This document shows, piece by piece, positions 12,451 through 59,419 of a DNA stretch of 64,000 bases. The stretch comes from Isurus oxyrinchus. Lineage: Eukaryota. The stretch is taken from positions 124,001 through 188,000 of the forward strand of contig JANJGN010000926.1 in assembly GCA_026770705.1 (NCBI GenBank), read 5' to 3'. The notes below the pieces were generated by a model that ran no database searches, had not been told where the DNA came from, and worked only from the letters and a program-made list of their open reading frames with translations. The position numbers were made by a program, and so were the translations under genes. The stretch's first letter is position 1. Every line of letters starts with the position of its first letter.

Positions 12451-12589
12451 CATTGGTAACGGACAATTAGCTCACTGGAGGAGGGGAATCCACAAATATC
12501 CCCATCCTCAATGATGGGGGAGCCCAGCACATCAGGGCAAAAGATAAGGCTGAAGCATTTGCTACAACAATTATCCATTTCTGTCTGGC

Positions 12590-21010: not shown

Positions 21011-21037
21011 ATGATGAGATTGTTGCTGTACAAAGCT

Positions 21038-21177
21038 TCAATCAGGCTGTCGACTTCCTTTCACTGTTTGTCTCTCCCAGACACAGACTCCAGTGATAGT
21101 GATAACCACAGCCACAAGGAATATCACAGCTCGTATTCCCAGGATCAGGATCACGTGCAGAATCTCTCCTCCACTGT
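21038..21177 (-). CDS. Gene C TM/short-tail terminal exon with intramembrane Arg (xSGGEILHVILILGIRAVIFLVAVVITITGVCVWERQTVKGSRQPD*)
   Basis: Pyrimidine-rich acceptor tttctttctgtgtgttctctag| in phase 1; long hydrophobic segment with Arg (CGA at 21131-21133); 12-aa Tyr-free tail; not in the ORF track. Confidence 0.8.
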
Positions 21178-22294
21178 CTAGAGAACACACAGAAAGAAAT
21201 CATCACTGACTCTCCGCTTTCAATCTCTCACTCTGGCTGAACAATCAAGCTTCATATCACTGCAACATTTGCTGTAATATTGACCCATCCACTGGGATTC
21301 AATGTGGAATGAATGTTTTCATTGTAAACACTCTAAGAGTGGACAATCGGAACTTTCCCCTTAGCGTGGAACATTGGTGAGAATGGATCATTGTGCTGTT
21401 GGACTCCCTGTCCAATGTTTCTCTCCATCGCTGTGTACAGGATTGTGCTGTAGAAAATTCTGGAAACGTTTAGTGCAGGGTGGAAATCCATCTCGGACGT
21501 GTGTGCGAATCGGGCAGGATCGAGATGGACTCCCCCACGGACTTACACCCCCCGCTTAATAAACAGTTCCAATCTTTACCCAGAGAGAGGGGAGAATATG
21601 GAACTCGCTCCCACAGGGAGTGGTTCAGGTGAGTAGTAGCAAATTGGGAAGTGAAATTGCTTGAAAAGCTGGGAGATGCAAGGGTTAAGTGCTACCATGC
21701 CACCACTGGTGGGAGAGTGTAACTGCAGCGTGACGTTTACATAGGCAATCCCCATTATGAACAGGGACATTGGACATCATGTGCAAAATGGGCTCTGGAA
21801 AGGTGAGAACATGATGTAAGCTTTTCACCAACAGAAATGCCTTCGTAAACCTCTCCATCTCTCTCTTACTGTCAGATACTCAAACAACATTTCACACAGA
21901 ATTAATCAGGAGGAGTTGGGACAGGTGACTGGTCAAAGGGTTAGGTTTCAGGAAGCTTTTTAAAGGAGGATAGAGAGTTAGAGAGGCAGAGAGTATCTGT
22001 GAGAATCTCTGTGCATCTGGGTGTCTAATAGACTTTGCAATTTCCGCGTTCTTCCATAAACTTGAAAGGGAATACAACTCCCAGAATCCATGTCAACTCT
22101 CCGGTGCAGCACTGAGGGAGGTCAGGTAACCCACGGGGGAGAATGTGTTAGTGTGTTTGTTTGTGAGTGTGTCCTTTTGTGTGCTCATACATGTGGGATT
22201 GTGTGTCTGCACGTGTCTATTTAGGTTTGTATAATTGTGTGTGTTTGTGTAGTGTTTGAATCTGAGAGAGCTGTTGAAGTCTGTGTACACTCAC

Positions 22295-22480
22295 GTTCCA
22301 CAGTGATGGTTATGAAACCCTCCACTGCTCCATGTTCATTCTCTGCCACACACTGATAGTCTCCAGTGTCCCTGGATGTAACATGAGGAATCACGAACCA
22401 CAGCTCATTGTTGGAACTTGTTCTGTTCATTGTGATATTCAGATGTCAGGGCAGGACTCAACATGACAGATCACAGGTTT
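22295..22480 (-). pseudogene. Gene C decayed third Ig C2 exon (5' part lost, internal frameshifting deletion)
   Basis: 3' half MNRTSSNNELW...DYQCVAENEHG and donor are intact; VICHVESCP is out of frame, ASNLTW is missing, and no usable acceptor was found. Confidence 0.8.
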
Positions 22481-22770
22481 ACCAACAGGAAGTGAACAAC
22501 AATTTATATTTAATGGGAAGAGAGTGCTGATTGATTGGCAAGTGGTCTCTGATTGGAGGTGGTGTTGCCATGGAAAATAATGTGTGCGAGCTGTAAACTT
22601 TAGACAGATTGTCTCTTCATTCAGCAATAATCATATAAAGATCAGTTAACTTCTATCGACTGTGAAGCACTTTGAGAGGTCTGAGAATGTAGATACTGAG
22701 AATGGGCTGCACTGTCAGAGGGTCAGCGCTGAGGGAGTGCTGATGTAGAATGAAAGGTGTCGGTACTTAC

Positions 22771-23067
22771 CTTGCACAGTTAGTACGAGGGTCCGCTCCG
22801 ATGAAACAGATGGATATCTCACTCTGCAGCTGAGAGTGTGTCCGTGGTGTTTGAGTGATGGGATCAGGGTCAGAACAGAAGTATAGGTCAGAGTGACACC
22901 ATGCTGAGTTACAGTGTTTGAGACTGATCCAGGTACGTCAGTGGGAGTGTCCCAGGTTAAGACAGGTGCTGCTGTTCCATTGCACGTTGTGTTGATGGTG
23001 CAGCTTACATCCACACACTTTCCTGCTATAATTTCAGCAGGGAATATCGTGGGTTTATCTGTGAAAT
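22771..23067 (-). CDS. Gene C Siglec domain-2-type C2 exon
   Basis: 297 nt, phase 1/1, open, near-identical to 15002-15298 and 57941-58237. Confidence 0.9.
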
Positions 23068-23880
23068 CTAACAGACAGAGAATGGATCCTTTTAGAGAAA
23101 TATAACGTGAAGCATCAGTTCAAATAGAAATCACAATCCTACAAGAGAAAGCACTTTTACAAGGATGATATCAGAACTGAGAGATTACAACGATCAGGAG
23201 AGAATTTCCTATTTTCAGACTTAGTGGAGTTTCTGTCTCTCAGATGAATTCACTTCCACTTCGAGACAATTGAATTGACAATCCCAGGTGAGGGTGGGGG
23301 AGCAGCTCACAGTTCCTGACACACTGGCTTGTTACTTTCTCCGAAATCTGCCAGATTAAAATTCTATCCTGTTCCCAGCAGGAGAGAATCCATTTGAACC
23401 AATCACTGAACCGGCATCTAAAGCAGATGATCAGGTTATTGATCACATTGCTGTTTCTGGGAGCTTCCTGTGAATAAATTGGCTGCTGTGTGTCCCATAT
23501 TACAACAAGGGCAACATTTCAAGAATTATTTCATTGGTTGTGAATCCATTTGCAATGTACAGAGGTGTTGAAAGGCGCTATAGAAATGCGAATCTTTCTT
23601 TTGTCGATATGTAAGACTGTCAAACAGGGTTAGGGAGATCGATGGGAGTGGATATCCCGAAAACATTGATGGACACAGTCAATACATTTAATCATTGATA
23701 TTAAAGTGAGTATTAGAGGTTGCTTTAGGACTGAACTGGAAGCTATAACCAGGTTATTGAGAATCAGACAGTGTGTTATAATAAGCTGTGTTTTGTGTTA
23801 ATATGTAAACGTCACAGTTTGTGTTATTTCCCATTGAGAGTTGAATGTGAATTGTTGAGTAATTATAACACAGCACTTAC

Positions 23881-24249
23881 CAGAAATGTGAAGCTGGGTT
23901 ACAGGGTAATAGTTATGGCTCGGACCATTGTCAAATTCTATTCTGAAAAAATAAGGTCCTGCATCTTCCCGTCTGATGTTGTTTATAATCAGGGAACAGT
24001 CGCCATCTTTCAGGTCTCCAGACAGCCGGGTCCGTTGGCGGAACCGTGGTAACTCGTGACTGTGATCCTTGGAGTGAAAGGCAATGGCAGCCCAGGGAAT
24101 CTGATTCTCATTATTAAACCAGACTCCACCTCGCGGTTGGTTTTCCAGACACGATGGATAACTGTAATGACAAGGAATCTGTACACATGAACCTTCCTGC
24201 GCTGTCACCTCTCGTGGAGTGTCACATTTCCACTCTTGTGAGGGTTCAA
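23881..24249 (-). CDS. Gene C V-set exon V2 (essential Arg retained; extra Cys in WKCD and YPSC)
   Basis: 369 nt, phase 1/1, open, YFFRIE motif. Confidence 0.92.
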
Positions 24250-24309
24250 CTGGGGAGAGAAATCTCAATATTTAACTCTGGATGGTTTGTGGATCCACTA
24301 GACTCAACT

Positions 24310-25105
24310 TTACAGATGAGGCTGAATTGGGGGGATGGTCAATACTGAGGAGGACGACAACAAATTATTTTGGCAGGAAGAATAGAAAAACAGGATATTA
24401 TTTAAATGGAGAGAGGCTGCAGAATGCAGTACAGAGGGATCTAGGTGTCCTTGTACATGAATCACAGAAAGTCAGCATTCAGGAACACCACGGAATGAGG
24501 AAGGCAAGTGGAATGTTGGCCTTTATTGCAAGTGGATGGAGTATAAAAGGAGGGAAGTCTTGCAACAGCTGCACAGGGTGTTAGTGAGATTGTAACAGGA
24601 TCATTGTGTACAGGCAGTTCAGAGAAGCTTCACTGGGCTGATTCCTGGGATTAAAGGGTTTGTCCTGTGAGGAAATGTTGAGCAGGTTGGGCCTGTATCC
24701 ATTGGAGTTTAGAAGAATGAGGGGTGACCTTATTGAAACATATCCGATTCCGAGGGGGCTTGACAGGGTGGATGCTGGGAGGATGTTTCCCCCTCGTGGG
24801 GGAATCTAGAACCAGGGAGCACAGTTTCGGAATGAGGGCTCCCCCATTTAAGACTGAGATGAGGAGGAATTTCCTCTCTCAGAGGGGCGCTAGCCTGTGG
24901 AATTCTCTTCCCCAGAGAGCAGTGGAGGCTGGGCCATTGAATAGACTCAAGGCTGAGTGAGGCAGGTTTTTGATCGACAAGGGGGTCAAGGGTTTGGGGG
25001 ACAGGCAGGAAAATGGAGTTAAGGCCACAACCAGATCAGCAAGAGCAGGCTCGAGGGGCTGAATGGCCTGCTCCTGTCCCTATTTCTTATGTTCCTACAT
25101 TCTTA
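24310..25105 (+). mobile_element. CR1 LINE 3' fragment (paralogous copy ~59480-60310)
   Basis: YYLNGERLQ..QRDLGVLVH and FKTEMRRNFLSQR motifs. Confidence 0.85.
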
Positions 25106-26726
25106 CCTTCTTAAAATATTAAAGCTGCAGAATAAACATGCAAGTGACTGACCCGCTCGACCCACCTTCCATCTGGGGGTCCCATGGGGAGGACCCTTCC
25201 TGAGCCAGATCCACCAGCCAACATGGTCTGGATCCGAGCACAGGAGACACGGGGGGGAGTGACTAACAGGCTCCTTGTGACAGGCCCCGTCTGTCCAATG
25301 GCTGGCTTTCAGCTGCCAAGGCCAGAGTGGTCCTTGCTAAAACCGGCTCAGGACAGGCCAGGACCCCTGTGCAGACCCCCTCCAGCGCTGCAGCCTCTGT
25401 ACAAACCCCTCATGCGCTTGTGGAGAGACACAAACAAGGCTGCACATTACCGAGGAGAATCCCCTCTACGGACTAAGGTGCTGACTCATCACCTTAAACT
25501 CAGCAAATGAGGAGGCTCTCGCTCGGTATCGGGACTTGGCATTCGCTCAATAAAAATAATCAAATTACATTTTGGTCAGAAATCTAAGGAGGTTGTACAT
25601 TCCCTCAAAAATAAGACTCGATCTGGGGTCTAGGGTCAAAGGGCAACAACTTATATTTACACAACAACTTGAACATGACAAATCACCCCAAGGTGCTACA
25701 CAGGAGCGTCATAAAACAAAGTATGTCACGCAGACACATGTGGAGATATTAGCGACAGCTGGCCAGAAGAGGACGGTGTTATGGAGAATCTTCAAAGGGG
25801 GATGAAATGGATAGTGAGAGAGAGACAGAGCGATAGAGAGAGTGAGAGAGAGGGACGAAGAGGGGTTGAGGGAGGGTATTACAGAGCTCGGGTCCCAGGC
25901 AGCTGAAGGCACGGCCGCCGATGTTGGAGTGATGGGATCGGGGGATGGTCAAGAGGCTGGAATTGGATGAGAGCAGAGACCTCAGAGGGTTGGAGGGGCT
26001 GGAGGAGGTTACAGAGATAAGGAGGGTTGTAGTGATTGGAGGAGGTTACAGAGATAGGGATGGTTGTAGAGGCTGGAAAATTTAAGAGAGATTGGGAGAG
26101 TGTAGGGTATGGAGGAGTTCGCAGAGCTAGAGAGGTTTGTAGTGGCTGGAGGAGGTTGCAGAGATTGGTAGGTTTGTTGTGCAGGATGATTTTACAGATA
26201 TAGGGAAGCAGCAGAGGCTTGAAGAGGTTACAGAGATAGGGAGGGTTGTAGGTACTGGAGGAGGACGAGGAGATTACGGAGATAGTGAGGAAACAAAGAT
26301 GAAAATTTGGACATTGAGACTTTGCTTGACCAGGAGCCAGTCTCGGTCATCGAGCAGAGCGGGTGATAAGGGAACGGGACTTGGTGTGAGTAAGGACGTG
26401 GTCAGCAGTTTTGGATGGCCTCAAGTTTATGGAGTGTAGAGCGTGTGTTGGAACAGTCGAGTCTGGAGGTAATGAAGGCATGGATGAGGGTTTCAGCAGC
26501 AGATGAGCTGAGACAGGGTGATGTCGTGCGATGTTACGGAGGTGGAAATAGACGGTGTTAGTGAGGGCGCAGATATGAGGCCGGAAGCTCATCTCAGGAT
26601 CAAATGGGACAACAAAGCTGTGAACAGTTGAAAACAAAGAAAACTGCGGATGCTGGAAATCTAAAACAAAAACAGAATTACCTGGAAAAACTCAGTAGGT
26701 CTGGCAGCATCGGCGGAGGAGAAAAG

Positions 26727-26765
26727 AGTTGACGTTTCGAGTCCTCATGACCCTTCGACAGAACT
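26727..26765 (-). ncRNA. Minimal type I hammerhead-ribozyme-like motif in the Penelope terminus (mirror copy 30379-30417, + strand)
   Basis: AGTT-CTGTCGA-A-GGGTC-ATGAG-GACTC-GAAAC-GTC-AACT: stem I, variant core, stem II, GAAA, GUC triplet. Confidence 0.65.
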
Positions 26766-27166
26766 TGATTTCGAGTCCAGGAAAGAGTTGAAATATAAGC
26801 TGGTTTAAGGTGTGTGGGGGGGGGGGGGGGGGGAAGGAGAGAGAGAGAGAGACAGAGGTGCTTGTGTAGACAAACAAGCAGTGATAGAAGCAGATCATCA
26901 AAAGATGTCAGTAACAATGGTACCAAAGAACACATAGGTGTTAAAGTTAAAGTTGGTGATATTATCTAAACGAATGTGCTAATTAAGAATGGATGGTAGG
27001 GCACTCAAGGTACAGCTCTAGTGGGGGTGGGGGGAGCATAAAGGATTTTAAAATATTTAAAAATAATGGAAATAGGTGGGAAAAGAAAAATCTATAAAAT
27101 TTATAGGGAAAAAAAAGGGGGAAAAAAAGGGGGAAACAGAAAGGGGGTGGGGATGGGGGAGGGAGC

Positions 27167-29737
27167 TCACGACCTAAAGTTATTGAATTCAATATTCAGA
27201 CCGGAAGGCTGTAAGGTGCCTAGTCGGAAGATGAGGTGTTGTTCCTCCAGTTTGCGTTGGGCTTCACTGGAACAATGCAGTAAGCCAAGGACAGACATGT
27301 GGGCAAGAGAGCAGGGTGGAGTGTTAAAATGGCAAGCCACAGGGAGGTTTGGGTCATTCTTGCGGACAGACCGCAGGTGTTCTGCAAAGCGGTCGCCCAG
27401 TTTACGTTTGGTCTCTCCAATGTAGAGGAGACCACATTGGGAGCAACGAATGCAGTAGACTAAGTTGGGTGAAATGCAAGTGAAATGCTGCTTCACTTGA
27501 AAGGAATGTTTGGGCCCTTGGACGGTGAGGAGAGAGGAAGTGAAGGGGCAGGTGTTACATCTTTTGCGTGGGCATGGGGTGGTGCCATAGGAGGGGGTTG
27601 AGGAGTAGGGGGTGATGGAGGAGTGGACCAGGGTGTCCCGGAGGGAGCGATCTCTACGGAATGCCGATAAGGGGGGTGAAGGGAAGATGTGTTTGGTGGT
27701 GGCATCATGCTGGAGTTGGCGGAAATGGCGGAGGATGATCCTTTGAATGCGGAGGCTGGTGGGGTGATAAGTGAGGACAAGGGGGACCCTATCATGTTTC
27801 TGGGAGGGAGGAGAAGGCGTGAGGGCGGATGCGCGGGAGATGGGCCGGACACGGTTGAGGGCCCTGTCAACGACCGTGGGTGGAAAACCTCGGTTAAGGA
27901 AGAAGGAGGACATGTCAGAGGAACCGTTTTTGAAGGTAGCATCATCGGAACAGATGCGACGAAGGCGAAGGAACTGGGAGAATGGGATGGAGTCCTTACA
28001 GGAAGCGGGGTGTGAGGAGCTGTAGTCGAGGTAGCTGTGGGAGTCGGTGGGTTTGTAGTGGATATTGGTGGACAGTCTATCACCAGAGATTGAGACAGAG
28101 AGGTCAAGGAAGGGAAGGGAAGTGTCAGAGATGGACCACGTGAAAATGATGGAGGGGTGGAGATTGGAAGCAAAATTAATAAATTTTTCCAAGTCCCGAC
28201 GAGAGCATGAAGCAGCACCGAAGTAATCATCGATGTACCGGAGAAAAAGTTGTGGAAGGGGGCCGGGGTAGGACTGCAACAAGGAATGTTCCACATATCC
28301 CATAAAGAGACAGGCATAGCTGGGGCCCATGCGGGTACCCATAGCCACACCTTTTATTTGGAGAAAGTGAGAGGAGTTGAAGGAGAAATTGTTCAACGTG
28401 AGAACAAGTTCAGCCAGACGGAGGAGAGTAGTGGTGGATGGGGATTGTTCGGGCCTCTGTTCGAGGAAGAAGCTAAGGGCCCTCAGACCATCCTGGTGGG
28501 GGATGGAGGTGTAGAGGGATTGGACGTCCATGGTGAAGAGGAAGCGGTTGGAGCCAGGGAACTGGAAATTGTTGATGTGACGTAAGGTGTCAGAGGAATC
28601 ACGGATGTAGGTGGGAAGGGACTGGACAAGGGGAGAGAGAAGGGAGTCAAGATAACGAGAAATGAGTTCTGTGGGGCAGGAGCAAGCTGAGACGATCGGT
28701 CTACCAGGGCAGTTCTGTTTGTGGATTTTGGGTAGGAGATAGAAGCGGGCCGTCCGAGGTTGGGCGACTATCAGGTTGGAAGCTGTGGGAGGGAGATCCC
28801 CAGAGGAGATGAGGTCAGTGACAGTCCTGGAAACAATGGCTTGATGTTCAGTGGTGGGGTCATGGTCGAGGGAGAGGTAGGAGGAAGTGTCTGCGAGTTG
28901 ACGCTCAGCCTCCGCGAGGTAGAGGTCAGTGCGCCAGACAACAACAGCACCACCCTTGTCAGCGGGTTTGATGACAATGTCAGGGTTGGACCTGAGAGAA
29001 TGGAGTGCAGTAAGTTCAGAGAGAGACAGGTTAGAATGGGTGAGAGGAGTAGAGAAATTGAGACGACTAATGTCGCGCCGACAGTTCTCAATGAAAAGAT
29101 CAAGAGAAGGTAAGAATCCAGAGGGAGGGGTCCAGGTGGAGGGAGAATATTGGAGATGGGTAAAAGGATCTGTTGAACTGGGAGAGGACTCCTGCCCAAA
29201 GAAGTGAGCCCGGAGACGAAGACGGCGAAAGAAGAGTTCAGCATCATGCCGAGCCCGAAATTCATTGAGGTGAGGGCGTAAGGGTATGAAACTAAGTCCT
29301 TTGCTGAGCACTGAACGTTCAGCATCGGAGAGGGGAAGGTCAGGGGGTATAGTGAATACACGGCTGGGGCTGGGATTGGAAGATGGGGTGGGGACGGAGG
29401 GACAGGCTGGGGTGGAGGGTCCTAGATGGGTGTTGGTGTCGATGAGTTGTTGGAGCTTGCGTTCCTTAGCAGTTGAGAGAAAGAGAAAAAGTTTCTTGTT
29501 GAGGCGTCGGATGAGCCGAAGGATAAAATGAAACTGAGGGCACGCGCAGCTTTGAAAAAGGGTACGGCGGTGCTGCTGGAGGGAAAGGTCGAGTGTGTTC
29601 ATATGGCGGCGCATGGCACTGAGTGTGGATTTCAGAATGTGACGGGAACAGCAGTCTGAGAAACGTTTTATGTCCCGGAGATACCGGTAATCCTGGGTGG
29701 GTTCGAAAGATGAGGGGTGGAATTTCAGTTGAAATCC
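27167..29737 (-). CDS. Penelope-like reverse transcriptase + GIY-YIG endonuclease (5'-truncated; frame stays open to ATG 30079 through the inverted repeat)
   Basis: KPADKGGAVV, LPKIHK, GRPIVS, QIKGVAMGT, RYIDD, NLVYCIRC..C..LYIGET...RFAEH, GLN; no stops. Confidence 0.93.
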   Translation of the reverse strand, partial: GFQLKFHPSSFEPTQDYRYLRDIKRFSDCCSRHILKSTLSAMRRHMNTLDLSLQQHRRTLFQSCACPQFHFILRLIRRLNKKLFLFLSTAKERKLQQLIDTNTHLGPSTPACPSVPTPSSNPSPSRVFTIPPDLPLSDAERSVLSKGLSFIPLRPHLNEFRARHDAELFFRRLRLRAHFFGQESSPSSTDPFTHLQYSPSTWTPPSGFLPSLDLFIENCRRDISRLNFSTPLTHSNLSLSELTALHSLRSNPDIVIKPADKGGAVVVWRTDLYLAEAERQLADTSSYLSLDHDPTTEHQAIVSRTVTDLISSGDLPPTASNLIVAQPRTARFYLLPKIHKQNCPGRPIVSACSCPTELISRYLDSLLSPLVQSLPTYIRDSSDTLRHINNFQFPGSNRFLFTMDVQSLYTSIPHQDGLRALSFFLEQRPEQSPSTTTLLRLAELVLTLNNFSFNSSHFLQIKGVAMGTRMGPSYACLFMGYVEHSLLQSYPGPLPQLFLRYIDDYFGAASCSRRDLEKFINFASNLHPSIIFTWSISDTSLPFLDLSVSISGDRLSTNIHYKPTDSHSYLDYSSSHPASCKDSIPFSQFLRLRRICSDDATFKNGSSDMSSFFLNRGFPPTVVDRALNRVRPISRASALTPSPPSQKHDRVPLVLTYHPTSLRIQRIILRHFRQLQHDATTKHIFPSPPLSAFRRDRSLRDTLVHSSITPYSSTPSYGTTPCPRKRCNTCPFTSSLLTVQGPKHSFQVKQHFTCISPNLVYCIRCSQCGLLYIGETKRKLGDRFAEHLRSVRKNDPNLPVACHFNTPPCSLAHMSVLGLLHCSSEAQRKLEEQHLIFRLGTLQPSGLNIEFNNFRS

Positions 29738-31387
29738 ACGTAAACTGGGCGACCGCTTTGCAGAACACCTGCGGTCTGTCCGCAAGAATGACCCAAACCT
29801 CCCTGTGGCTTGCCATTTTAACACTCCACCCTGCTCTCTTGCCCACATGTCTGTCCTTGGCTTACTGCATTGTTCCAGTGAAGCCCAACGCAAACTGGAG
29901 GAACAACACCTCATCTTCCGACTAGGCACCTTACAGCCTTCCGGTCTGAATATTGAATTCAATAACTTTAGGTCGTGAGCTCCCTCCCCCATCCCCACCC
30001 CCTTTCTGTTTCCCCCTTTTTTTCCCCCTTTTTTTTCCCTATAAATTTTATAGATTTTTCTTTTCCCACCTATTTCCATTATTTTTAAATATTTTAAAAT
30101 CCTTTATGCTCCCCCCACCCCCACTAGAGCTGTACCTTGAGTGCCCTACCATCCATTCTTAATTAGCACATTCGTTTAGATAATATCACCAACTTTAACT
30201 TTAACACCTATGTGTTCTTTGGTACCATTGTTACTGACATCTTTTGATGATCTGCTTCTATCACTGCTTGTTTGTCTACACAAGCACCTCTGTCTCTCTC
30301 TCTCTCTCCTTCCCCCCCCCCCCCCCCCACACACCTTAAACCAGCTTATATTTCAACTCTTTCCTGGACTCGAAATCAAGTTCTGTCGAAGGGTCATGAG
30401 GACTCGAAACGTCAACTCTTTTCTCCTCCGCCGATGCTGCCAGACCTACTGAGTTTTTCCAGGTAATTCTGTTTTTGTTTTAAAGCTGTGAACAGATTGG
30501 CTTCAATCTCAGAGAGCTGCCAGGGAGAGGAATGGAGTTGGTAGCGAGGGAACAGAGTTTGGAGCGGGGAATGAAGACAATGGCTTCAGTCTTTCCAATA
30601 TTTAATTGGAGGGAATTTCTGCCCATCCAGTACTGGATGTCGGATAAGCAGCCTGATAATTTAGCAGCAGTGGAGGAGTCGAGAGAGGTGGTGGTGAGGT
30701 AGAGCTGGGCATCCTCAGTGGACAGGTGAAAACTAACACTGTTCAGATGATGCTGCAAAGCCATTGCAAGTGATTCTCTGGCTACGATGAGATGGATAAG
30801 AATGGAGCCAGGGGAGAGCAGTCCCACCCAGCTGGACGACAGTGGAGAGGGGTTGGAGGAAGATGGTGTGGTCGAGCGTGTCAAAGGCTGCAGACAGATC
30901 GAGAAGGAGGAGGAGGGAAAGTTGACCTTTGTCACAGTCACACAGGATGCCATTTGTGACCTTGATAAGAGCTGTTTCAGCACAGTGGCTGGGGTGGGAA
31001 CCTGATTGGAGGGATTCAAACATGGAGTTCCGGGAAAGATGGGAACGGATTCGGGAGATGGAAACACGTTCAAGGACTTTGCAGGTGAAAGAGAGGCTGG
31101 AGATGGGACGGGGGTTTACACGGACAGTGTGAGGGGTGGAAGGTGTAGTGGGGAGGAGACACTTCACTCAGGGGGGAGGTGTCATCACCCCTCAGCTCGG
31201 TTTACGTTACAGCTATGATGTGGATTCAATCACACACAATAAGCTCATGGATCTGGGAGCAGAAATAAACAAATCATTAAAAATAGTGACGCTGGTTAAC
31301 ACGGTCAAAAAACAAGCAAATCAAACACTATTATTTCCCATTGAGTGTTGGATGTGAATTGTTGAGTAATTATAACGCAGCACTTAC

Positions 31388-31774
31388 CAGAAACCTGAAG
31401 CTGGGTTACAGGATAGTAGCTGTATCTATTTCTGCTGTCAAATTCTATTCTGAAATAATAATATCCTGCATCTTCCCGTCTGATGTTGTTTATAATCAGG
31501 GAACAGTCGCCATCTTTCAGGTCTCCAGACAGCCGGGTCCGATGGCGGAACCGTGTTAACTCGCGATTGTGATCCTTGGAGTGAAAAGCTATTGTCCCTC
31601 TAGACCTTGTATTCCATGTATTCCATGTGTACCATTTCACGTACCAGATTCCGACACGTGCTCTCCCTACTACACGTGCTGGATATCTGTAGTTACATGG
31701 AATCTGTACACACGAACCTTCCTGCGCTGTCACCTCTCGTGGAGTTTCACCTTTCCACTCTTGTGACAGTCCAA
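31388..31774 (-). CDS. Gene C V-set exon V1 (divergent loops, essential Arg retained in YYYFRIE)
   Basis: 387 nt, phase 1/1, open, splice sites intact. Confidence 0.92.
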
Positions 31775-32399
31775 CTGGGGAGAGAAATATCAATATTTAA
31801 CTCTGGATGGTTTGTAGATCCACTAGACTCGATATCCACCCCCTCCTTCACGGAGTCAGAGTGGCTGCAATGTGGACCATCTACAGGACACACAGGGATC
31901 TCCCCAATGTTTCACAATGGATAGAAGAGAATCCTGGACACAAAAGCGGAAATATTCATGCTACATTGGCTCATGGTCCTCAGGACCCTGTTTGTGTACA
32001 AACCTGCTCTGCAACAGAACTGAAGTTGGGGAAAATCCATTTGGAATTCCATTGTCCAGGGCATTGGGTTAACTTGCTAAGTTTGTTTTAAATCTAACAT
32101 TTATTTTTGGTCTGTTGCCTTAAAGGAAGTGTAACTGGGAGTCAGGTTAATTAGGAATTTTAGGAGTTATTATAGCAGTCATTGTAGTCTTATGTATGTG
32201 CTTGAAATCTTTTATTTTGATGACAAATATTTTAATTTATTGTTTTAAATCTCTAAATGTCTTGATGGAGTTATTGCTTCTGAATTCAGTGCACAATCAT
32301 AACAAATACAAATTGCAAAATCATTATGATAGTGTGACCAAGTTTCTCTCATGGACTTGGTCTGCCTGGCACACATCACCTGCCAAGTGATAACACTGT

Positions 32400-33707
32400 T
32401 GTAATATGCCTTTCAGGGACAGCAGCATGACATCACTCGAGGGGAAGTGTGTCATGTGATTTTTAGGAACTGGAGTTGGCTTAAGTAAGTTCGATGTATA
32501 TTTGTGTGTGTTAGGCATAAGGTCTATCTTTAAGTTCAAGTTTAGCTTGTATTTCTGTATTTGGGTGTTTAGAAAAGGGGGAACTTGACTTAAAAAGAAG
32601 CCAGCATTCCATTGAGGTTTTATGTCTGTTGAAGGGAAGTCAAAACAAATACAAGGTGTAAGAAACTGTGCTGTTGCCTAGCAACAGTGATCCAGAGGGA
32701 AGGACCCACAGAGACCGAGAAAAACAGAAAAGTACTTTCAGTTCTGTTGAAAGGAGTTGCCAGGAGAAGCAGCAAAGGAGCGGGACAGATAGTCAGTCCC
32801 AAAGTAAAGATGAAGCCAAAACTATCGAGTGGAACAGGAGAAAGGGCCCAAGAAAACCTTCTAGTCAAATCTGGAAAAGGCCCTGTTAAGTGAAGTTAAG
32901 AGTGAGGAGCGGACAAAGGCTTCAAGCTTAAAGGAAGAAGCAGCAGGACACAGACCTAAAGCAAAATAGGCTTGTGAGAAGCCAGAAGATCCTAGGAGAC
33001 ACCACAGGTTGGTGACTCATTACTACGGCCATGTGAAGCCATGGTGTTCCATTGACACGGCTGAGCATTGGAGAGACAGGGCGTGGAAGGAAGGCTGAAT
33101 GCACGTGGCGATCCAGGGGGCAGGAACATGGGAAGGAGAGTTTGAAATAGTGAAAGTGGTCCCTTGTGGAAGGTGCCTGAGTGAAAGTGTCATGTTGGAG
33201 AAGATTCCAAAGTGTGTTCTTGGAGAGTGGAGATTGGAAACCCTCATATGGATATCTCAGTTCAGTGAGACTGGTTGGCTCACAGTGTAACAAGCGTCTG
33301 GGGACAGCTGAGGAGAGAACCATAGCATTTGTTTCAAGTGGGCTCTGTCACTTGGTTTAAGAGTGTGGTGTCCCTGACCACAGGTCGTCTATTGGTTTAC
33401 ATGGACTGTGTACTTAGTGTGAACATGATAGTATAAGATAGTTATTGTAACTTGTGTTATCTTTGTGAATCTGTATATATCTGCAAAGATATAGGTCTGG
33501 GTGAAGGAGTAATGTAATATAGTTTGTCTTTCCTAGTTTAATAAATGTTTTATTCTTTTGTTAGAAGTTCATCAGATGATTCCTGTGACTCTGTTCAGTA
33601 GCCGCACTCCACATTCCTAAATAAAAAATAAAAGTTAGGACCTATCAAGCTGAGTTCCACCCTGGGATCTGACTTGCCCAGTAGTAACATCAGCTGGGAT
33701 GATAACA
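32400..33707. mobile_element. Solo-LTR-like element (partial copy from ~63618 to window end)
   Basis: TGT...ACA ends, AATAAA near 3' end, no coding capacity. Confidence 0.4.
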
Positions 33708-34499
33708 CCATCCAGTCCAAGTTTCACTTTGGCCTGTGAGCAGAACACAGCTCACACAGTTTGGCTGCAGGTGTCTCCCAGCTTTCTATCTTTGTATATC
33801 TGTTCTCATGTCCCCGTTCTAAATAAATGAACCCACAATGTATTTACCCAATTCCGAATCAGTGGCTGGTGCCTTTATATCATTATAAAAACACAGCATG
33901 GTGATCAGCGGTGGCCAAACATTCTGGCAGCAAGATTCAGTACAGGTATGACGTGGTGAACAGCCTTAGATCGAGCTACATGACATGAGATGACCCTCGA
34001 CGCTTTGGTCAGACCACAACAGAGACAAAGCATCAGAGAGGGTTGAAATCGCAGTGTACTGACTGCTCAGGAAACCTTTGAAGACACAGTGACGGGAAAG
34101 AGCTCAAGTAAAGAGCTGGGGAGCAGACGGATCCCTCGTGGTGAGATTACAGCACACGGCCTGTAGGTCAGTGAGTGGGACAGTGCGTATCGCCAGGACC
34201 AGCAGCGGGTTAGCTCAGTCAGGGAAGGCGAATGACCAGGGTGTGGGCTGGATTGATAGTGAGCGAGGGAGAGTCAAACACACAAAAACCATTATAAAAA
34301 TCAGCCCAGAGAAGTTAGTGATTATAACGGGCGGCTTCGAGATTGCTGAACAGCAAATTGAATAAAAAACAAAGACTCCATTACTCCGTGGTGTGTTCCT
34401 GCCACAACCCGTCTTCGTGGGCGGAGCTTCGGAAAAGCACGTGAAAGGGGCTAAAGCGACACTCATCCCAGGTCCTGTAGGAGAAGGAAGGTCAAAGGA

Positions 34500-37073: not shown

Positions 37074-37113
37074 CTTGGAGAAGTGACAGGAGGAAGTAAG
37101 ATTTCCCGATCAT
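37074..37113 (-). CDS. Gene C leader exon, coding part (MIGKSYFLLSLLQ); exon begins at 37155
   Basis: Same peptide as the gene A leader; flanks 36930-37400 match 17240-17720. Confidence 0.85.
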
Positions 37114-40600: not shown

Positions 40601-40939
40601 GTGCTGCACTGTCAGAGGGTGGGCACTGAGGGAATGCTGCTCTGTCAGACCTACCATATTTCAGATGATGTTTGAAATTAGCAACATGCCTCATGTATAA
40701 TTATATATCATCAACTCAAAATAAATAGATTATTCCTGTACATTTTACTTTTACTGTAAATTGTTTGTAGTTTCATCTCCTTAGGAGCCAGGCTTGTCTG
40801 ATCACTATTTTTAAATAACGTTAATAATAAAGAAGCGACAATCCACACGCACACAGGTACACACACACACACACTCACTCACAAGGGTACATAGACAGAC
40901 ACACACTCACTCACACATGTTCACCCAGACACACACACA

Positions 40940-43200: not shown

Positions 43201-46200
43201 GCAGTTTGTTGTCGCTCGGATATTGTCTTTGTGTGTGTGTTTGTGTGTGTGAGTGAGTGTGTGAGTGAATGTGTGTCTGTGTGTGTGAATGTGAGTGTGC
43301 TTGTGTCTGTCTGNNNNNNNNNNNNNNNNNNNNNNNNNNNNNNNNNNNNNNNNNNNNNNNNNNNNNNNNNNNNNNNNNNNNNNNNNNNNNNNNNNNNNNN
43401 NNNNNNNNNNNNNNNNNNNNNNNNNNNNNNNNNNNNNNNNNNNNNNNNNNNNNNNNNNNNNNNNNNNNNNNNNNNNNNNNNNNNNNNNNNNNNNNNNNNN
43501 NNNNNNNNNNNNNNNNNNNNNNNNNNNNNNNNNNNNNNNNNNNNNNNNNACAGAGTGAAACCTCCTTGAGTCTGGCCACTGTGTTTAACATTTAAGGCAC
43601 ACAGACAGGATGTGGTTAAAAGGTGAAACCACAAGGAGTGAGTGACTTTCTCAGTGACTGTCTCTCTGTGGGTTTCCTGTGGGTTTCTGTGAACTGCCTG
43701 TGGTTTTAAAAAGAATCTTCCAACCCCACATGCACGGCATCAAATAAGGATTTGGAAGCTGCTGCTCAGAGAGTAACTAGTCCCCCGAGAATTCACAGCC
43801 CCTCAAACACAGATTAACAGCATTAATCCTGACCGTCAGCCCACTCACTCATTGCCTCTTGTCTCAGACACTAGAAAGTGGAAGTTAAGGCCGGATTTTC
43901 ACTCCCGGGTCGGGGGACACAGAGACGGCAGGAAAAAATAACAAAATAGGTCTCGAGCACACAGAGCTCCAAGGGAAGGGTCGTGCTGCAGCTAAGGTGT
44001 GAGACATGGCACATTCCGCGGATGCAGCATTGAGGCTTGTATGTCTACACAGCTGATGTAGGTGCACATGGAACACATGTGAATGAGCACTGTGATGCAC
44101 ACACACCCTGGAGAGTAATATCCCTCCATGCACTACATATCAGGCTAACATCAACTCATGTTGTCATTGCTGACTCACAGGGTTGAAGCAGGTCACAGAG
44201 ACGGCTGCGTCTGGGGTTGGGCCAGCCTCCCTGAGACTCACCGTCCTAACATTTGATTGGATCACGTCTGATCTGTATCTTAACCCCATCCACCCGCCTC
44301 GGTTCCGTGACCCTTAACTCCCCGACCCAACAAAAATCTCCCAATCTCAGTTTTGAAATTTACAATTGACCCCTCCCAGTCTCGACAGCTTTTTCTGGGG
44401 GAGTGAGTTCCAGATTTCCACCCCCCCTTTGTGTGAAGAAGTGCTTCCTGACATCACCCCGTGAACGGCCTGGCTCCAATGTTAATGTTCTGCCCCCTTG
44501 TTCTGAACCCTCCTCACCTCAACCCCATCAGAGGAAATAGTTTCTCTCTATTGCCCGTAACAAAGCCTTTAATCATCTTAAACCCCTCGATTAGATCACC
44601 CCTTAATCTTCGAGACTCGAGGGAACACAAGCCTGGTCTGTGCAACCTGTCCTCGGGATTTCACCCTTTCAGCCCCGGGATCCTTCTGGTGACACTGCAC
44701 AGCACCCCCTCCAAGGACAATATATCCTTCCTAAGCTGCTGGACCCAGAACTGAACTCAGTGACACCAGATTGGTTGTGAGGGGATCTTAATAAAACTGT
44801 GCCAGACACTTCAAAAATCTCTTCAATTCAACCTTGTAAACGCAGTAGGAAAAATCCCAGGGGGCCATTATATCTTAGCAACATCGTAAACTTGGCCAAA
44901 AGAATCCCCCTGGTCACTCCTGAGTGTTACTCATATTGTAAACACAATGTATACAGCTCCTCCAGTCTCTGAGAAGCAAAGGTAGGACACTAGAGCACCA
45001 CCACTGGCAGGAGGCTGTAATTACAGTGTGACATGTTTACATGGGAATGTTCCATTACCAATGACACAGGAATTTAAATAATCAGAAGGGCATGTGACAA
45101 CAGGAAGTGGTGCCTTGGAGAATGGAATTATTCACTAGAGTACGTATTTAATTTGATAAAAATGTACAGAAATGTCAGGGCATTTTAATTGCTTCTTTTT
45201 TGTATTCATTCACTGTCACTGGCGAGGCCAGAATTTATTGCCCATCCCTAATTGTCCTTGAGAATATGGGGGTGAGCTGTCTTCTTGAGCTGCTGCAGTC
45301 CCTGTGGTGTAGGTACACCCACAGAACTGTTAGGGAGGGTGTTGCAGGATTCTGACCCAGCGACAGTGAAGGAACGGTGATATATTTCCAAGTCAGGATG
45401 GTGAGTGACTTCGAGGGGAACTTCCAGGTGGTGGTGTTCCCATGTGTCTGCTGCCCTTGTCCTTCTAGATGGTAGTGATCATGTGTTTGGAAGGTGCTGT
45501 CTAAGGAGGCTTGGTGACTCCCTGCGTTGCATCTTGTAGATGGTACACACACTGCTGCCACTGTGCGTCAGTTGTAGAGGGAGAGAATGTTTGTGGACGG
45601 GGCGCAAATCAAGCGGGGCTGCTTTGTCCTGGACGGTGTCGAGCTTCTTGAGTGTTGTTGGAGCTGGACACATCTAGGAAAGTGGAGAGTATTCCATCAC
45701 TTCTGACCTGTGCCTTGAGGTTGGTGGACAGGTTTTGGGGAGTCAGGAGGTGAGTTACTACCACAGGATTCCCAGGCTCTGGCCTGCTCTTATAGTCACA
45801 GTGTTTATATGGCTAGTCCAGTTCAGTTTCTTGTCATTGGTAACCCCCAGAGTGTTGATAGTGTGGGATTCAGCAATGGTGATGCTATTGGACATTAAGG
45901 GGAGATGGATATATTCTCTCTGGTTGGAGATGGTCATTGCCTGGCACTTGTGTGGCATGAATGTTACTTGCCACTTGTCAGGCCAAGCCTGGATATTGTC
46001 CAGGTCTTGCTGCATTTGGACATGGACTGCTTCAGCATCTGATGAGTCATGAATGATGTTGAACGTTGTGCAATCATCAGCGACCATCCATAATTCTGAC
46101 CATCTGATAGAATGAATGTCATTGATGAAGCAGCTGAAGATGGTTGGGCCTAGGACACTACACTGAGCAACGCCTGCGGTGATGTCCTGGAACTGAGATG

Positions 46201-47456: not shown

Positions 47457-47705
47457 TCAGTTTTTCTGGAACCTGATCTGTGCGTATTCCGTGTCCTCGC
47501 TCCTGTGCACAGTCCTGTCACCGCTGGGCAGCTTTGAAAAGTTGATGTTGGCGTAGAGAAGCTCGTCGGTATTGTCGGGGTTCCCATGTCCAACATCACC
47601 TCCCACTGGACCTTCAGAGAGATCCCGGGGAGCTGGGGTCTCCCCCTCACTAGTTGTGTCTCTGGTTGTTTCCCGGGGCTCAGTAATCAGCACGTTCTGT
47701 TCATC
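47457..47705 (-). CDS. Gene B terminal exon with ITIM (LLYANI) and ITSM-like motif (TEYAQI)
   Basis: 249 nt, phase 0; DELLYANINF...TEYAQIRFQKN* matches the two-tyrosine tail layout of inhibitory Siglecs. Confidence 0.92.
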   Translation of the reverse strand, partial: DEQNVLITEPRETTRDTTSEGETPAPRDLSEGPVGGDVGHGNPDNTDELLYANINFSKLPSGDRTVHRSEDTEYAQIRFQKN

Positions 47706-48428
47706 CTACAGAGAAATGGAAACAGAAGACATCCTCACATCATTTACTGGCACTGATAGGGTTAAATTATTGTGCAGCCTCGTTAGTGTCAGTCGTGTCT
47801 CAGTGGGTTTAAGCCTTTTTTTCCCTCTCTTTCTCTGTCTCTCTTTCTCTCTCGCTTTCTCTCTCTGTGTATAATTTAATCTCTATCACACTCCAACAGT
47901 GCAGCACTCCCTCAGTACTGACCCTCTGACAGTGCAGCACTCCCTCAATACTGACCCTCTGACAGTGCAGCACTCCCTCAGTACTGACCCTCTGACAGTC
48001 CAGCACTCCCTCAGTAATGACCCTCTGACAGTACAGCACTCCCTCAATACTGACCCTCTGTCAGTGCAGCACTCCCTCAGTACTGACCCTCTGACAGTGC
48101 AGCACTCCCTCAGTACTGACCCTCTGACAGTGCAGCACTCCCTCAGTACTGACCCTCTGACAGTGCAGCACTCCCTCAGTACTGACCCTCTGACAGGGCA
48201 GCACTCCCTCACTACTGACATCAGGTGCCTTGTCATTATTGTGTTCAGGTTTCTGGTCAAAGAGCGAGTGATGGAGGGTGACAGAGGCTGGGAGCGAGAG
48301 ACAGTGCTGTCCACTGAGCCATTGCTTCACAGGGCGATATCTGTGTGTAACCCGGCTGATAATCTGGTATACGTGTTGTCTACACACTGAGATAGAAGCT
48401 TTGGAGTGAGTGTAAACAGCTCCTGTAC

Positions 48429-48510
48429 CTGGTGCTTCACAGAGAGTGACCTGGGGGTCAATGCATTGTCACTGGTCCCTGAAACTCTCTCCTGCGTTGC
48501 TGTCTTTCTC
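48429..48510 (-). CDS. Gene B cytoplasmic exon 1 (KRKTATQERVSGTSDNALTPRSLSVKHQ)
   Basis: 82 nt, phase 2/0, AG/GT intact. Confidence 0.85.
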
Positions 48511-49386: not shown

Positions 49387-49483
49387 TTTCTCACACAGAT
49401 GAAGATGAAGATTCCAGCCAGGAAAACACTCAACATGATCCCAGCCGTGAACAATCCTACTGTCCATTTACTGGAGTCTCTAC
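49387..49483 (-). CDS. Gene B transmembrane exon (uncharged, same as gene A)
   Basis: 97 nt, phase 1/2, matches 4572-4668. Confidence 0.9.
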
Positions 49484-50872: not shown

Positions 50873-51166
50873 CTTTGACCCACAGATAAACCTTGAACAT
50901 GGCTTCCCCGTGTGGGTTTTGAACCGAGCAGGATGCAATCACTCCCCCCTCATCCTGGGGTCTCATCAGGGTGAGGGAACCAGTCACCAGATGCCCATCT
51001 CTGACCTGCCACGACACAAAACCTCCGTGTGTTTGGTTACCACTGATGTTGGCACTGGGCAGGTGCCAGGTGAGGTCTCCGGGTGGGTTGGAGTTGGCCA
51101 CACAGACGCAGGTGACCCCCTCTGATCTCCGAGTGCACTCCGACTGCTGGGAAATCTCCGGCTTAT
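50873..51166 (-). CDS. Gene B membrane-proximal MAG-D5-like C2 exon
   Basis: 294 nt, phase 1/1, open. Confidence 0.88.
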
Positions 51167-53230: not shown

Positions 53231-53512
53231 ATTCCACAGTGATGGTTATGAACCCCTTCACTGCTCCATGTTCATTCTCTGCCACACACTGATAGTCTCC
53301 AGTGTCCCTGGATGTAACGTGAGGAATCACCAACCACAGCTCATTGTTGGAACTTGTTCTGTTCATTGGGACATTAAGATGTCGCCACGTCAGGTTAGAA
53401 GCTGGGAAGCTCTCGACAGAGCAGATTATCACTGCAGAATTCCCCTCAATTATATTGATTGATGAAGCGTTAATCATATCAAGAGAAGTAATTGAGAGAT
53501 TCTGTGGTCCAT
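53231..53512 (-). CDS. Gene B third Ig C2 exon (single copy)
   Basis: 282 nt, phase 1/1, DGPQNLSITS...DTGDYQCVAENEHG. Confidence 0.9.
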
Positions 53513-56500: not shown

Positions 56501-57940
56501 CGACAGACAGGAAACAGAGGGTCAGAATAAATTAGTCTTCATCTGAGTGGCAGGCGGTGACTATTGGTGTACCACAGGGATCCGTGCTTGGGACCTAACT
56601 ATTCACGATATATTTAAATGACTTGGGTGAGGGAGCCAAGTGCAATATTTCCAGGTTTTCTGATGACATAACGCTGGGTAAGGGTGTGAGCTGTGAGGAA
56701 GATGCAAAGAGGCTTCAAGGCGATTTAGACAAGTTGTGTGTGTGGGCAAACACATGGCAGATGATGTGGATGAATGTGACATTGTAGGCTTTGGTGTGAA
56801 AAACAGAAAGGCAGAGTATTATTTAAATGGTGATATATTGCGAAATGTGGATGTACAAAGGGATCTGGGTGTCCTTGTGCACTAGCCAATGAAAGTAAAC
56901 AGGCAGGTGCAGCAAGTAATTCGGAAGGCAAATGGTATGTTGGCCTTCATTGCAAGAGGATTTGTGTTCAGGAGTAGGGATGTCTTACTGCAGTTATACA
57001 AGGTCTTGGTGAGACTGCACATGGGGTACTACGTGCCGTTTTGGTCTCCCTCCCTAAAAAAGGATAGACTTGCCATCGAGAGAGCGCAGAGAAGGTTCTC
57101 TAGGCTGATACCAGGGGCGGCAGGACTGTCGTATGAGGAGAATTGGTACGACTGGGTCTATATTCACTAGAGTTTAGAAGAATGAGAGGAGACCTGAATA
57201 AACGTAAGAAATTCTAACAGAGATAGACAGACTGGATGGAGGGAGGATGCATCCCCTGGTTGGGGAGTCTAAAACCAAGGGCGACAATCTCAGGATACAG
57301 GGCAGGCCATTTTGGACTGAGATAGGGAAACATTTCTTCACTCAGAGGGTGGTCAATCTGTGGAATTCTCCATCACAGAGGCTGTGGAGGCCGGGTCACT
57401 GAGTGTATTCAAGAAAGAAACTGATAAATATTTTGATATTAGGGGCATCAAAAGGTACGGAGAGAAAGCGGGAATAAGGCTTTGAGATAGAGGGTCAGCC
57501 TTGATCATATTGAATGGCGGAGAAGGCTTGAAGGGCTGAATGTCCTAATCCTGCTCCTAGTTTCCATGTACCTAGGTATCTATAGAACTATCTCTCTCCG
57601 TGTTCTATTCTCATGTGACCTTGAGTAACTGATGATAAATACTATCTATTTACATTGTTAATATTAAACTTTTATACTACATCTCCCCCAAAATCTTTGA
57701 CATCAATGAAGACAATATTTATATTATCCTATTTGTCTTTTAAGTTCAACCTTGGCCCCCTCTGCCCTATCAGGTAGGCATAAACAATCCCGAGGCTCAA
57801 TACAGGAAGAGCTCTCCCTGGTCAATATCACTAATAAAAAAGGACCTGTTTTGTCTTCAACCCAGTGATGTTTGTGGGATCTTGCTCTGCACATTGTATC
57901 CTATTACAGCTAATATAGAATCAAGGGTGTCTGTACTTAC

Positions 57941-58237
57941 CTTGCACAGTTAGTACGAGGGTCCGCTCCGATGAAACAGATGGATATCTCACTCTGCAGC
58001 TGAGAGTGTGTCCGTGGTGTTTGAGTGATGGGATCAGGGTCAGAACAGAAGTATAGGTCAGAGTGACACCATGCTGAGTTACAGTGTTTGAGACTGATCC
58101 AGGTACGTCAGTGGGAGTGTCCCAGGTTAAGACAGGTGCTGCTGTTCCATTGCACGTTGTGTTGAAGGTGCAGCTCACATCCACACGCTTTCCTGCAATA
58201 ATTTCAGCAGGGAATATCGTGGGTGTATCTGTGAAAT
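57941..58237 (-). CDS. Gene B Siglec domain-2-type C2 exon
   Basis: 297 nt, phase 1/1, open. Confidence 0.92.
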
Positions 58238-59050
58238 CTAACAGACAGAGAATGGATCCTTTTAGAGAAATATAACATGAAGCATCAGTTCAAATAGAAA
58301 GCACAGTCCCACAAGAGAAAGCAATTTTACAAGGATGATATCAGATCTGAGAGGATACAATGATCAGGAGAGAATTTCCTATTTTCAGACTTAGTGGAAT
58401 TTCTGTCTCTCAGATGAATTCACTTCCACTTTGAGACAATTGAATTGACAATCCCGGGTGAGGGCGGGGGAGCAGCTCACAGTTCCTGACACACTGGCTT
58501 GTTACTTTCTCCAAAATCTGCCAGATTTAAATTCTATCCTGTCGCCAGCAGGAGAGAATCCATTTGAACCAATCACTGAACCGGCATTTAAAACAGATGA
58601 TCAGGTTATTGATCACATTGCTGTTTCTGGGAGCTTCCTGTGCACAAATTGGCTGCTGTGTTTCCCATATTACAACAAGGGCTACATTTCAACAATTATT
58701 TCAATGGTTGTGAATCCATTTGCGACGTCCAGAGGTGGTGAAAGGTGCTATAGAAATGCAAATCTTTCTTTTGTTGATATGTAAGAATTTTAAACAGGAT
58801 TAGGGAGATTGATGTAAGTGGATAACCTGATAACATTGATGGACACAGTCAATACATTTAATCATTGTTATTAAAGTGAGTATTAGAGGTTGTTTTCGGA
58901 CTGAACTGGAAGCTATTAGCAGGTTATTGAGAATCAGACAGTGTGTTATAATAAGCTGTGTTTTGTGTTAATATGTAAATGTCACAGTTTGTGTTAATTC
59001 CCATTGAGTGTTGAATGTGAATTGTTGAGTAATTATAACATAGCACTTAC

Positions 59051-59419
59051 CAGAAACGTGAAGCTGGGTTACAGGGTAATAGTTATGGCTCGGACCATTG
59101 TCAAATTCTATTCTGAAAAAATAAGGTCCTGCATCTTCCCGTCTGATGTTGTTTATAATCAGGGAACAGTCGCCATCTTTCAGGTCTCCTGACAGCCGGG
59201 TCCGATGGTGGAACCGTGGTAACTCGTGACTGTGATCCTTGGAGTGAAAGGCAATGGGAGCCCAGGGAATCTGTTCCTCATTATTAAACCAGACTCCACC
59301 ACGCGGTTGGTTTTCCAGACACGTTGGATAACTGTAATGACATGGAATCTGTACACACGAACCTTCCTGTGCTGTCACCTCTCGTGGACTGTCACCTTTC
59401 CACTCTTGTGAGGGTTCAG
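59051..59419 (-). CDS. Gene B V-set exon (essential Arg retained)
   Basis: 369 nt, phase 1/1, GSCVQIPC / DCSLII / YFFRIE. Confidence 0.93.

Follow-up and report, generated by a model that had tools for sequence, protein, structure and literature searches.

Siglec-like receptor genes in tandem in Isurus oxyrinchus, with a probable inhibitory and activating pair sharing a V-set and a C2-set domain

Tandem set of immunoglobulin superfamily exons from Isurus oxyrinchus, every exon on the minus strand. The stretch of DNA analysed, called the window below, comprises 64,000 nucleotides (nt) of contig JANJGN010000926.1 (assembly GCA_026770705.1, positions 124,001 to 188,000), has a G + C content of 45.6% and contains six runs of N. 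Comparison of the window with itself resolves three related units, designated genes A, C and B (Table 1). Genes B and C have nearly the same V-set exon (V2) and C2-set exon (D2), followed in gene B by a putative inhibitory module and in gene C by a putative activating one. It is considered likely that they are an inhibitory and an activating member of an elasmobranch Siglec-like cluster, sharing V2-D2 and giving opposite signals. Gene C lies ~36 kb downstream of gene B. Gene A is 97.7% identical to gene B from D2 into the next intron and 94-95% identical further 3'; over the V exon identity is only 87%.

Gene C consists of a leader exon, two V-set exons (V1 and V2), the exon D2 and a terminal exon. 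The leader is 100% identical over 13 amino acids (aa) in tblastn searches with the leaders of shark homologues. The original prediction described a V-set and a C2-set domain followed by a transmembrane (TM) segment with an Arg and a short Tyr-free tail; the exons of such a receptor are present, open, in phase and bounded by canonical splice sites. In both gene C and gene B all exons have canonical AG acceptors and GT donors, and the immunoglobulin exons are of phase 1. When joined, the exons of gene C give a single terminal stop and a product of 281 aa, or 410 aa with V1 included; exons were joined only to count stops, and searches were run exon by exon. Tandem V-V models occur in relatives (P0003, P0005, P0006). 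The terminal exon (140 nt) lies behind the acceptor TTCTCTAG and encodes SGGEILHVILILGIRAVIFLVAVVITITGVCVWERQTVKGSRQPD, after which it stops. Its membrane span, ILHVILILGIRAVIFLVAVVITITGVCVW, is composed of ~29 hydrophobic residues with a single Arg. The tail, ERQTVKGSRQPD, is 13 residues long and contains no Tyr. The window holds no second copy of this Arg-TM exon, which has no similarity to the TM exon of gene B. No lost exon with an immunoreceptor tyrosine-based inhibitory motif (ITIM) was found downstream of the gene C TM exon, only a 166-nt block near the AATAAA at 20055 that is 80% similar to the 3' flank of gene B. The D3 remnant between D2 and the terminal exon is 95% identical in nucleotides to D3 of genes A and B over 161 nt.

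The V1-V2 intron of gene C contains a retroelement (26662-30482); the homologous site upstream of gene B is without it. The element looks Penelope-like: its intact open reading frame of 970 aa (27167-30079, minus strand) includes a reverse transcriptase domain and matches GIY-YIG weakly. It is flanked by 746-nt inverted repeats of 99.9% identity, an indication that it was inserted recently.

Gene B extends from its stop to beyond the last exon listed; its leader probably lies outside the window. From V2 onwards the frame has a single terminal stop and encodes 556 aa, with one Siglec-type V domain and three domains of the C2 type. All exons expected from the original prediction (V-set, C2-set, neutral TM, LLYANI and TEYAQI) were found. 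The last exon reads ...ELLYANINFSKLPSGDRTVHRSEDTEYAQIRFQKN up to the stop, with TEYAQI placed 23 residues after LLYANI and 17 residues between them. Cetorhinus P0003 and Carcharodon P0239 have tails that match this one at 89% identity. V1 of gene B is broken and V1 of gene C is intact, so the partners may differ in their outermost domain.

Gene A retains TEYAQI in its last exon (2068-2310); the first motif is FLYTNP and no longer an ITIM. Carcharodon models P0011 (LLYANP) and P0255 (LLYVNP) carry the same change, which is thus common to both species. At the 3' end of gene A a 1.5-kb segment with the first cytoplasmic exon is tandemly duplicated (9-1540 and 2934-4463, 93% identity).

Table 1. 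Features of the three receptor genes in the window. Positions are those of the window. ITSM, immunoreceptor tyrosine-based switch motif; AF2, AlphaFold2.
Feature	Position	Strand	Characteristics and basis
Gene A	~9-17428	-	
Gene C	21038-37113	-	
Gene C leader exon	37074-37113	-	MIGKSYFLLSLLQ; phase-1 donor GGTAAT
Gene C V1, upstream V-set exon	31388-31774	-	intact; YFRIE Arg; Pfam V-set + Ig_CD22; AG/GT sites
Gene C V2, V-set exon	23881-24249	-	C21/C26/C84; FFRIE Arg; PDB phmmer, AF2/Foldseek
Gene C D2, C2-set exon	22771-23067	-	CxxxxC pair (VSCTINTTC); Pfam C2-set_2 at 1e-8
Satellite piece, 33 nt, at 3' edge of B-C block	22694-22742	-	blastn
Gene C D3 remnant	22295-22447	-	3' half only; without acceptor; first Cys missing
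Gene C terminal exon	21038-21177	-	stalk, Arg-TM (ILILGIRAVIF), Tyr-free tail of 13 aa, stop
First AATAAA 3' of gene C stop	20050-20055	-	candidate poly(A) signal; pattern scan
Gene B	47457 to beyond 62989	-	
Gene B V1, probable pseudo-exon	62612-62989	-	in-frame TGA 62867-62865; Arg lost (LFTIKF); alignment with gene C V1
Gene B V2, V-set exon	59051-59419	-	
Gene B D2, C2-set exon	57941-58237	-	
Gene B D3, immunoglobulin exon	53231-53512	-	
Gene B D4, immunoglobulin exon	50873-51166	-	
Gene B TM exon	49387-49483	-	WTVGLFTAGIMLSVFLAGIFIFICV; span without charged residue
Gene B first cytoplasmic exon	48429-48510	-	
Gene B last exon	47457-47705	-	LLYANI (ITIM), TEYAQI (ITSM/ITIM-like), stop
Assembly gap	42204-42406		between gene B stop (47457) and gene C leader (37113)
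Assembly gap	43314-43549		between gene B stop (47457) and gene C leader (37113)
Assembly gap	53928-54208		gene B D2-D3 intron; TG/CA microsatellite flanks

No exon of gene B or gene C abuts an assembly gap, so the reading frame across the gaps is not in question. Paralogue A is collinear with the sequence on both sides of the gap within gene B and is itself interrupted by gaps at this position. On the sequence alone an additional exon within a gap is conceivable, but in the homologous models P0005 and P0021 D2 is followed directly by a D3-type domain with nothing between, and the Stegostoma model P0018 contains all seven gene B exons, in the same order and with no extra piece.

Genes B and C are joined by a block of homology that includes introns. 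V2 is identical at 114 of 122 aa (93.4%; 95.9% in nucleotides), D2 at 95 of 98 aa (96.9%; 98.3% in nucleotides), and the V2-D2 intron is 93.7% identical in nucleotides. Variants private to gene C include Cys8 in V2 and Cys17 and Ile24 in D2. The near-identity of these two domains, joined to opposite types of signalling module, is thereby borne out. Over the whole of V2, intron and D2 (22739-24613 against 57909-59778) nucleotide identity is 94.7%; the next 567 nt upstream are 98.4% identical, and a further block of 93% identity (30482-32782 against 61706-64000) holds the extra V exon. With 94-98% identity continuing through introns, the event that paired the two genes is recent. The homology stops sharply at 22739, 33 nt beyond the D2 donor. 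It resumes at 95% for 161 nt (22287-22447) and ends ~8 nt past the D3 donor; the next 2 kb of gene C, including the Arg-TM exon, are unique. A fragment of a 33-nt satellite lies exactly at the 3' edge of the block, which suggests that the satellite mediated the rearrangement.

Arrays of 33-nt satellite, located with Tandem Repeats Finder between and within the genes, are present at 18237-19690, 37724-38152, 40226-40649 and 47896-48219.

V2 is of the Siglec type in sequence and in predicted fold. Pfam assigns it to V-set and to Ig_CD22 (CD22-like first immunoglobulin domain), and assigns D2 to C2-set_2. In a phmmer search of V2 against PDB the top 17 matches are all Siglecs (E 3e-16 to 7e-12), the best being Siglec-5 (3e-16), followed by Siglec-7, Siglec-8, CD33, sialoadhesin, MAG and Siglec-10; PDB matches of D2 include the second domains of MAG, CD33, Siglec-8, -5 and -10. 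The essential Arg of the F strand is present: GPYFFRIEF lines up with GSYFFRVE in Siglec-5 and with GRYFFRME in Siglec-7. V2 of gene B, V2 and V1 of gene C and the V exon of gene A all retain this Arg, together with the N-terminal Trp and the disulfide pattern of Siglecs; V1 of gene B has lost the Arg. The family alignment shows little or no variation at C21, C26 and C84. EGSCVQIPC of V2 aligns with EGLCVLVPC of Siglec-5, and VSCTxNTTC of D2 aligns with VSCMVPDNC of MAG D2, which includes the extra cysteine. The V and D2 cysteines are predicted from these alignments to form disulfide bonds, the three of V supplying an intra-sheet pair and one cysteine for a bond between domains. The AF2 model of V2, built with 27 sequences, has a predicted local distance difference test score (pLDDT) of 87.8. 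In Foldseek searches with this model the top 45 matches are Siglec V domains (template modelling score 0.79-0.89), among them sialoadhesin, CD33, Siglec-7, Siglec-10 and MAG (0.80-0.89). The best matches in sequence and in predicted fold are thus Siglec-type, and the V domains do not group outside the Siglecs, an outcome that the original prediction had named as refuting it. By these V-domain criteria, which draw on sequence and a modelled structure, the genes are members of the Siglec family.

Evidence of splicing from D2 to the Arg-TM exon comes from contigs of four sequencing runs, aligned to 20600-24400 at a likeness of at least 97%. The runs were chosen by 31-mers shared with 20600-24400, and their RNA status is a guess. 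Runs X1-X3 are from one sample; X5 carries another organism code and belongs to another study. The joint 22771/21177 (GT..AG, minus strand, 1593 nt skipped) occurs in contigs of all four runs, hence in two organisms and two studies. It passes over the D3 remnant. The V2-to-D2 joint 23881/23067 occurs in contigs of three runs. A canonical exon-exon joint is hard to get from DNA. A transcript type that joins immunoglobulin exons to the exon at 21177, on which the original prediction depended, is therefore represented, with an insecure assignment to gene C. The contigs also contain a V-to-V2 junction and, from a paralogue, a D2-to-D4-type junction.

In contigs of X1 the end of a V exon (..QLHVS) is joined to an internal TTACAG acceptor within V2, at 24162; the Carcharodon isoform P0011 has the same odd N-terminus. 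This acceptor looks like a recurrent cryptic splice site that would truncate the V domain. There are also contigs in which the Arg-TM exon continues, without a splice, into the intron upstream of it (21125-21632); at 21632 they pass into sequence that is absent from the window and resembles a common interspersed repeat. They could reflect intron retention, a paralogue or DNA carry-over.

The receptor type is widespread among elasmobranchs. A full HMMER scan with V2 returned 33 proteins below 1e-30. A search with a Scyliorhinus canicula member returned 94 proteins, and all those with a named source are elasmobranch (~20 species of sharks, skates and rays). The exons of the window are closest to models of great white and basking shark (89-99% identity per exon). 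Three shark orders are represented among the 14 RefSeq models in which the motif VILILGIRA(V/G)IF was found. Arg-TM models: Carcharodon P0189, P0190 and P0191, with terminal exons 91-93% identical to that of gene C; S. canicula P0153 and P0154; S. torazame P0006 and P0090; Chiloscyllium punctatum P0021, P0155, P0156 and P0158; C. plagiosum P0256; Hemiscyllium P0157. Scyliorhinus and Chiloscyllium terminal exons are 77-81% identical to that of gene C. In 13 of the 14 models the motif exon directly follows an immunoglobulin exon (e.g., LTVQ/DSGGE, the slash marking the junction) and the protein ends within 17 residues; the exception, P0256, continues for 233 residues past the motif. Judged from this distribution, the Arg-TM cassette is old within sharks.

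The architecture V2-D2-TM(R) of gene C, with the same LTVQ/DSGGE junction, is annotated in Carcharodon ('Siglec-12', 'CD33-like') and S. canicula ('Siglec-13/14'): P0191, P0153 and P0154 have it as annotated, and P0189 and P0190 share V2-D2-Arg-TM and the junction. Exon identity of gene C is 90-97% to the Carcharodon models and ~80% to those of Scyliorhinus. These models are automatic predictions with borrowed mammalian names. The suggestion that the system might be undescribed thus holds in one respect: no paper describing these RefSeq models, as a paired system or otherwise, was found in the literature search. It does not hold in the other, since the family is already annotated in RefSeq (great white shark, catsharks, bamboo sharks) as Siglec-12/13/14 or CD33-like. 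Literature searches on shark or chondrichthyan Siglecs gave nothing relevant beyond one mention, in a list, in the whale-shark genome paper; those on DAP12 or FcR-gamma in cartilaginous fish gave nothing relevant.

The stingray Hypanus sabinus has, in model P0252, a different Arg-containing TM segment, ILLISLAVRGVLFLL, with a tail of 11 residues. Batoids may possess an activating cassette of their own.

The arrangement of the B-C block indicates how the pair may have arisen. The shared block includes introns, has its edge at satellite sequence 33 nt past D2 and is followed by half of D3; it therefore appears that a B-type gene replaced or homogenised the ligand-binding end of an activating gene. 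On the simplest reading, B-type sequence would have overwritten the 5' part of an older activating gene with the form ...D3-TM(R), as in P0006 and P0021, by segmental duplication or by gene conversion, and the stretch from the D2 intron to the middle of D3 would have been deleted afterwards. In the resulting gene C, D2 would be spliced directly to the old, shark-wide Arg-TM exon, which adds the motif-free tail of 13 residues. This product would be unable to signal alone; by analogy with known receptors, its Arg would pair with an acidic residue of an adaptor (DAP12, FcR-gamma) that carries the immunoreceptor tyrosine-based activation motif. LLYANI and TEYAQI of gene B would be tyrosine-phosphorylated and would recruit phosphatases with SH2 domains. 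The outcome would be a pair of receptors expected to recognise the same ligand and to transmit opposite signals. Sialic-acid binding, recruitment of adaptor and phosphatase and a role between host and pathogen are likewise proposed on the model of the mammalian receptors.

Several points weigh against a functional pair formed in this way. Gene C contains two extra cysteines and a D3 remnant that is broken. In the contigs each joint has only 23-31 letters on its shorter side, the last bases of D2 are identical in genes A, B and C, C-specific sites within V2 and the 5' part of D2 mostly show A- or B-type letters, and the runs were labelled RNA by guess. With so short a side, a D2 end common to the three genes and letters of the A or B type, the splice is shown for the receptor type and is not tied to gene C. 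The ratio of nonsynonymous to synonymous change between B and C (pN/pS) is ~0.5, on 14 and 5 differences, too few to separate constraint from neutrality; exon divergence is about equal to intron divergence.

The last of these points bears also on a different reading, judged rather unlikely, in which B and C are members of a large, module-shuffling family, their likeness results from recent segmental duplication without selection for matched binding, and the word paired describes the architecture only. The 94 family members from ~20 elasmobranchs indeed show many domain combinations, gene A has its 3' part in common with gene B, and V2 of gene B is nearer to V2 of the Carcharodon Arg-TM model P0189 (96.7% aa identity) than to V2 of gene C (93.4%). 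However, the homology stops directly beyond the second domain, just where it stops in SIGLEC5/14 and SIGLEC11/16, and both types of module are retained over at least three shark orders.

A ligand other than sialic acid, such as a protein, bound by a Siglec fold, is regarded as unlikely. The Arg column is not invariant in the family alignment, V1 of gene B lacks the Arg, and the G-strand aromatic residue of mammalian Siglecs is not obviously conserved when the sequence is inspected by eye. On the other side, the four intact V exons of the window (V2 of gene B, V2 and V1 of gene C, V of gene A) keep the FFR Arg, the disulfide pattern of Siglecs and the N-terminal Trp, and the best structural matches are sialoside-bound Siglec domains.

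Quite improbable is the reading of gene C as a decaying partial B-type duplicate upstream of an Arg-TM exon, with the spliced contigs derived from other, intact activating paralogues: the D3 remnant with a deletion junction at the satellite, the Penelope-like retroelement in the V1-V2 intron and the A- or B-type letters over 5' D2 and V2 would agree with it, but five exons are open, in phase and canonically spliced, the TM exon shows no differences from the gene C letters in the two deepest runs, the same V2-D2-TM(R) form is annotated in two other genera (Carcharodon P0191; S. canicula P0153/P0154), and an intronic remnant is harmless if skipped.

The likely inhibitory and activating pair of genes B and C resembles several known systems. 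The general paired design is also that of teleost NITR and LITR. In PILR alpha/beta, KIR and LILR, too, the ectodomains are similar, and the remainder of the receptor is either a tail with an ITIM or a charged TM with a short tail (PMC13358205). All of these differ from the shark genes in V domains that are not Siglec-type; PILR-beta matches V2 at E 2e-3, compared with 3e-16 for Siglec-5.

The closest likeness is to SIGLEC5/14 and SIGLEC11/16, the architecture named in the original prediction. These are adjacent genes on one strand with the first two immunoglobulin domains near-identical through a shared genomic block, one partner having an ITIM and an ITIM-like motif and the other a basic TM residue and a short tail (PMC4042635). 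Their homology block stops after domain 2, and primate conversion tracts cover the first two domains only (PMC4042635); the B-C block, which ends just past D2, agrees. Relative to SIGLEC5/14, the V exons of the window belong to an elasmobranch clade that is separate from that of the tetrapod CD33-related-like proteins, the activating exon of gene C is a shark-specific cassette without detectable similarity to the TM exon of gene B, and the extra upstream V exons allow possible tandem V-V forms.

With CD33-related Siglecs the shark genes share an ectodomain of V-set and C2-set domains, a membrane-proximal ITIM with a distal TEYxxI ~20 residues apart, and the best PDB matches of V2 (Siglec-5, -7, -8 and CD33). 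They differ in that the shark clade is not placed inside the tetrapod clade. In a quick maximum likelihood tree of 150 V domains, with weak deep nodes and with outgroup names (MAG-like, CD22-like, Siglec-n) that are automatic and unreliable as anchors, the four intact V exons of the window belong to a shark clade (SH-aLRT, Shimodaira-Hasegawa-like approximate likelihood ratio test, 96), nested in a broader assemblage (89) made up of sequences from chondrichthyans, gar, carp, turtle and frog. A separate clade (99) holds the CD33-related-like proteins of Xenopus, caecilian, turtle and mammals. In a phmmer search against 260 proteins the gene B tail matches elasmobranch tails and P0118, P0015, P0047 and P0088, with no match to the tetrapod CD33-related-like P0031 and P0038; the CD33-type tail is accordingly a resemblance of motifs and not a shown homology. 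A 2020 paper, in which only teleosts are covered, reports fish genomes to be without CD33-related Siglecs (PMC7226832).

The independent evolution proposed at the outset is reasonable for the pairing event, which is recent and lies within an elasmobranch V clade. The Arg-TM cassette, however, is old in sharks. A tentative alternative, rather doubtful at present, makes the elasmobranch family the sister group or ancestor of tetrapod CD33-related Siglecs; the design (V-C2, ITIM with TEYxxI, adaptor partners, 5' homogenisation) would then come from the jawed-vertebrate ancestor and have been lost in teleosts.

The standard case of a host response to pathogens cloaked in sialic acid is that of the paired Siglecs, which, to our knowledge, have so far been found in mammals alone. 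Where shark RefSeq models bear mammalian numbers in their names (Siglec-8, -10, -12, -13, -14), these do not reflect orthology. A shark cluster with the same solution would show that this solution arises repeatedly or is ancient, and comparative immunologists would gain in the shark pair another system in which to test how activating and inhibitory partners are kept matched by gene conversion. Should the origin in the jawed-vertebrate ancestor be true, sharks would provide an independent, still active system of decoy and counter-decoy in which the pathogen-mimicry theory of paired Siglecs could be tested.

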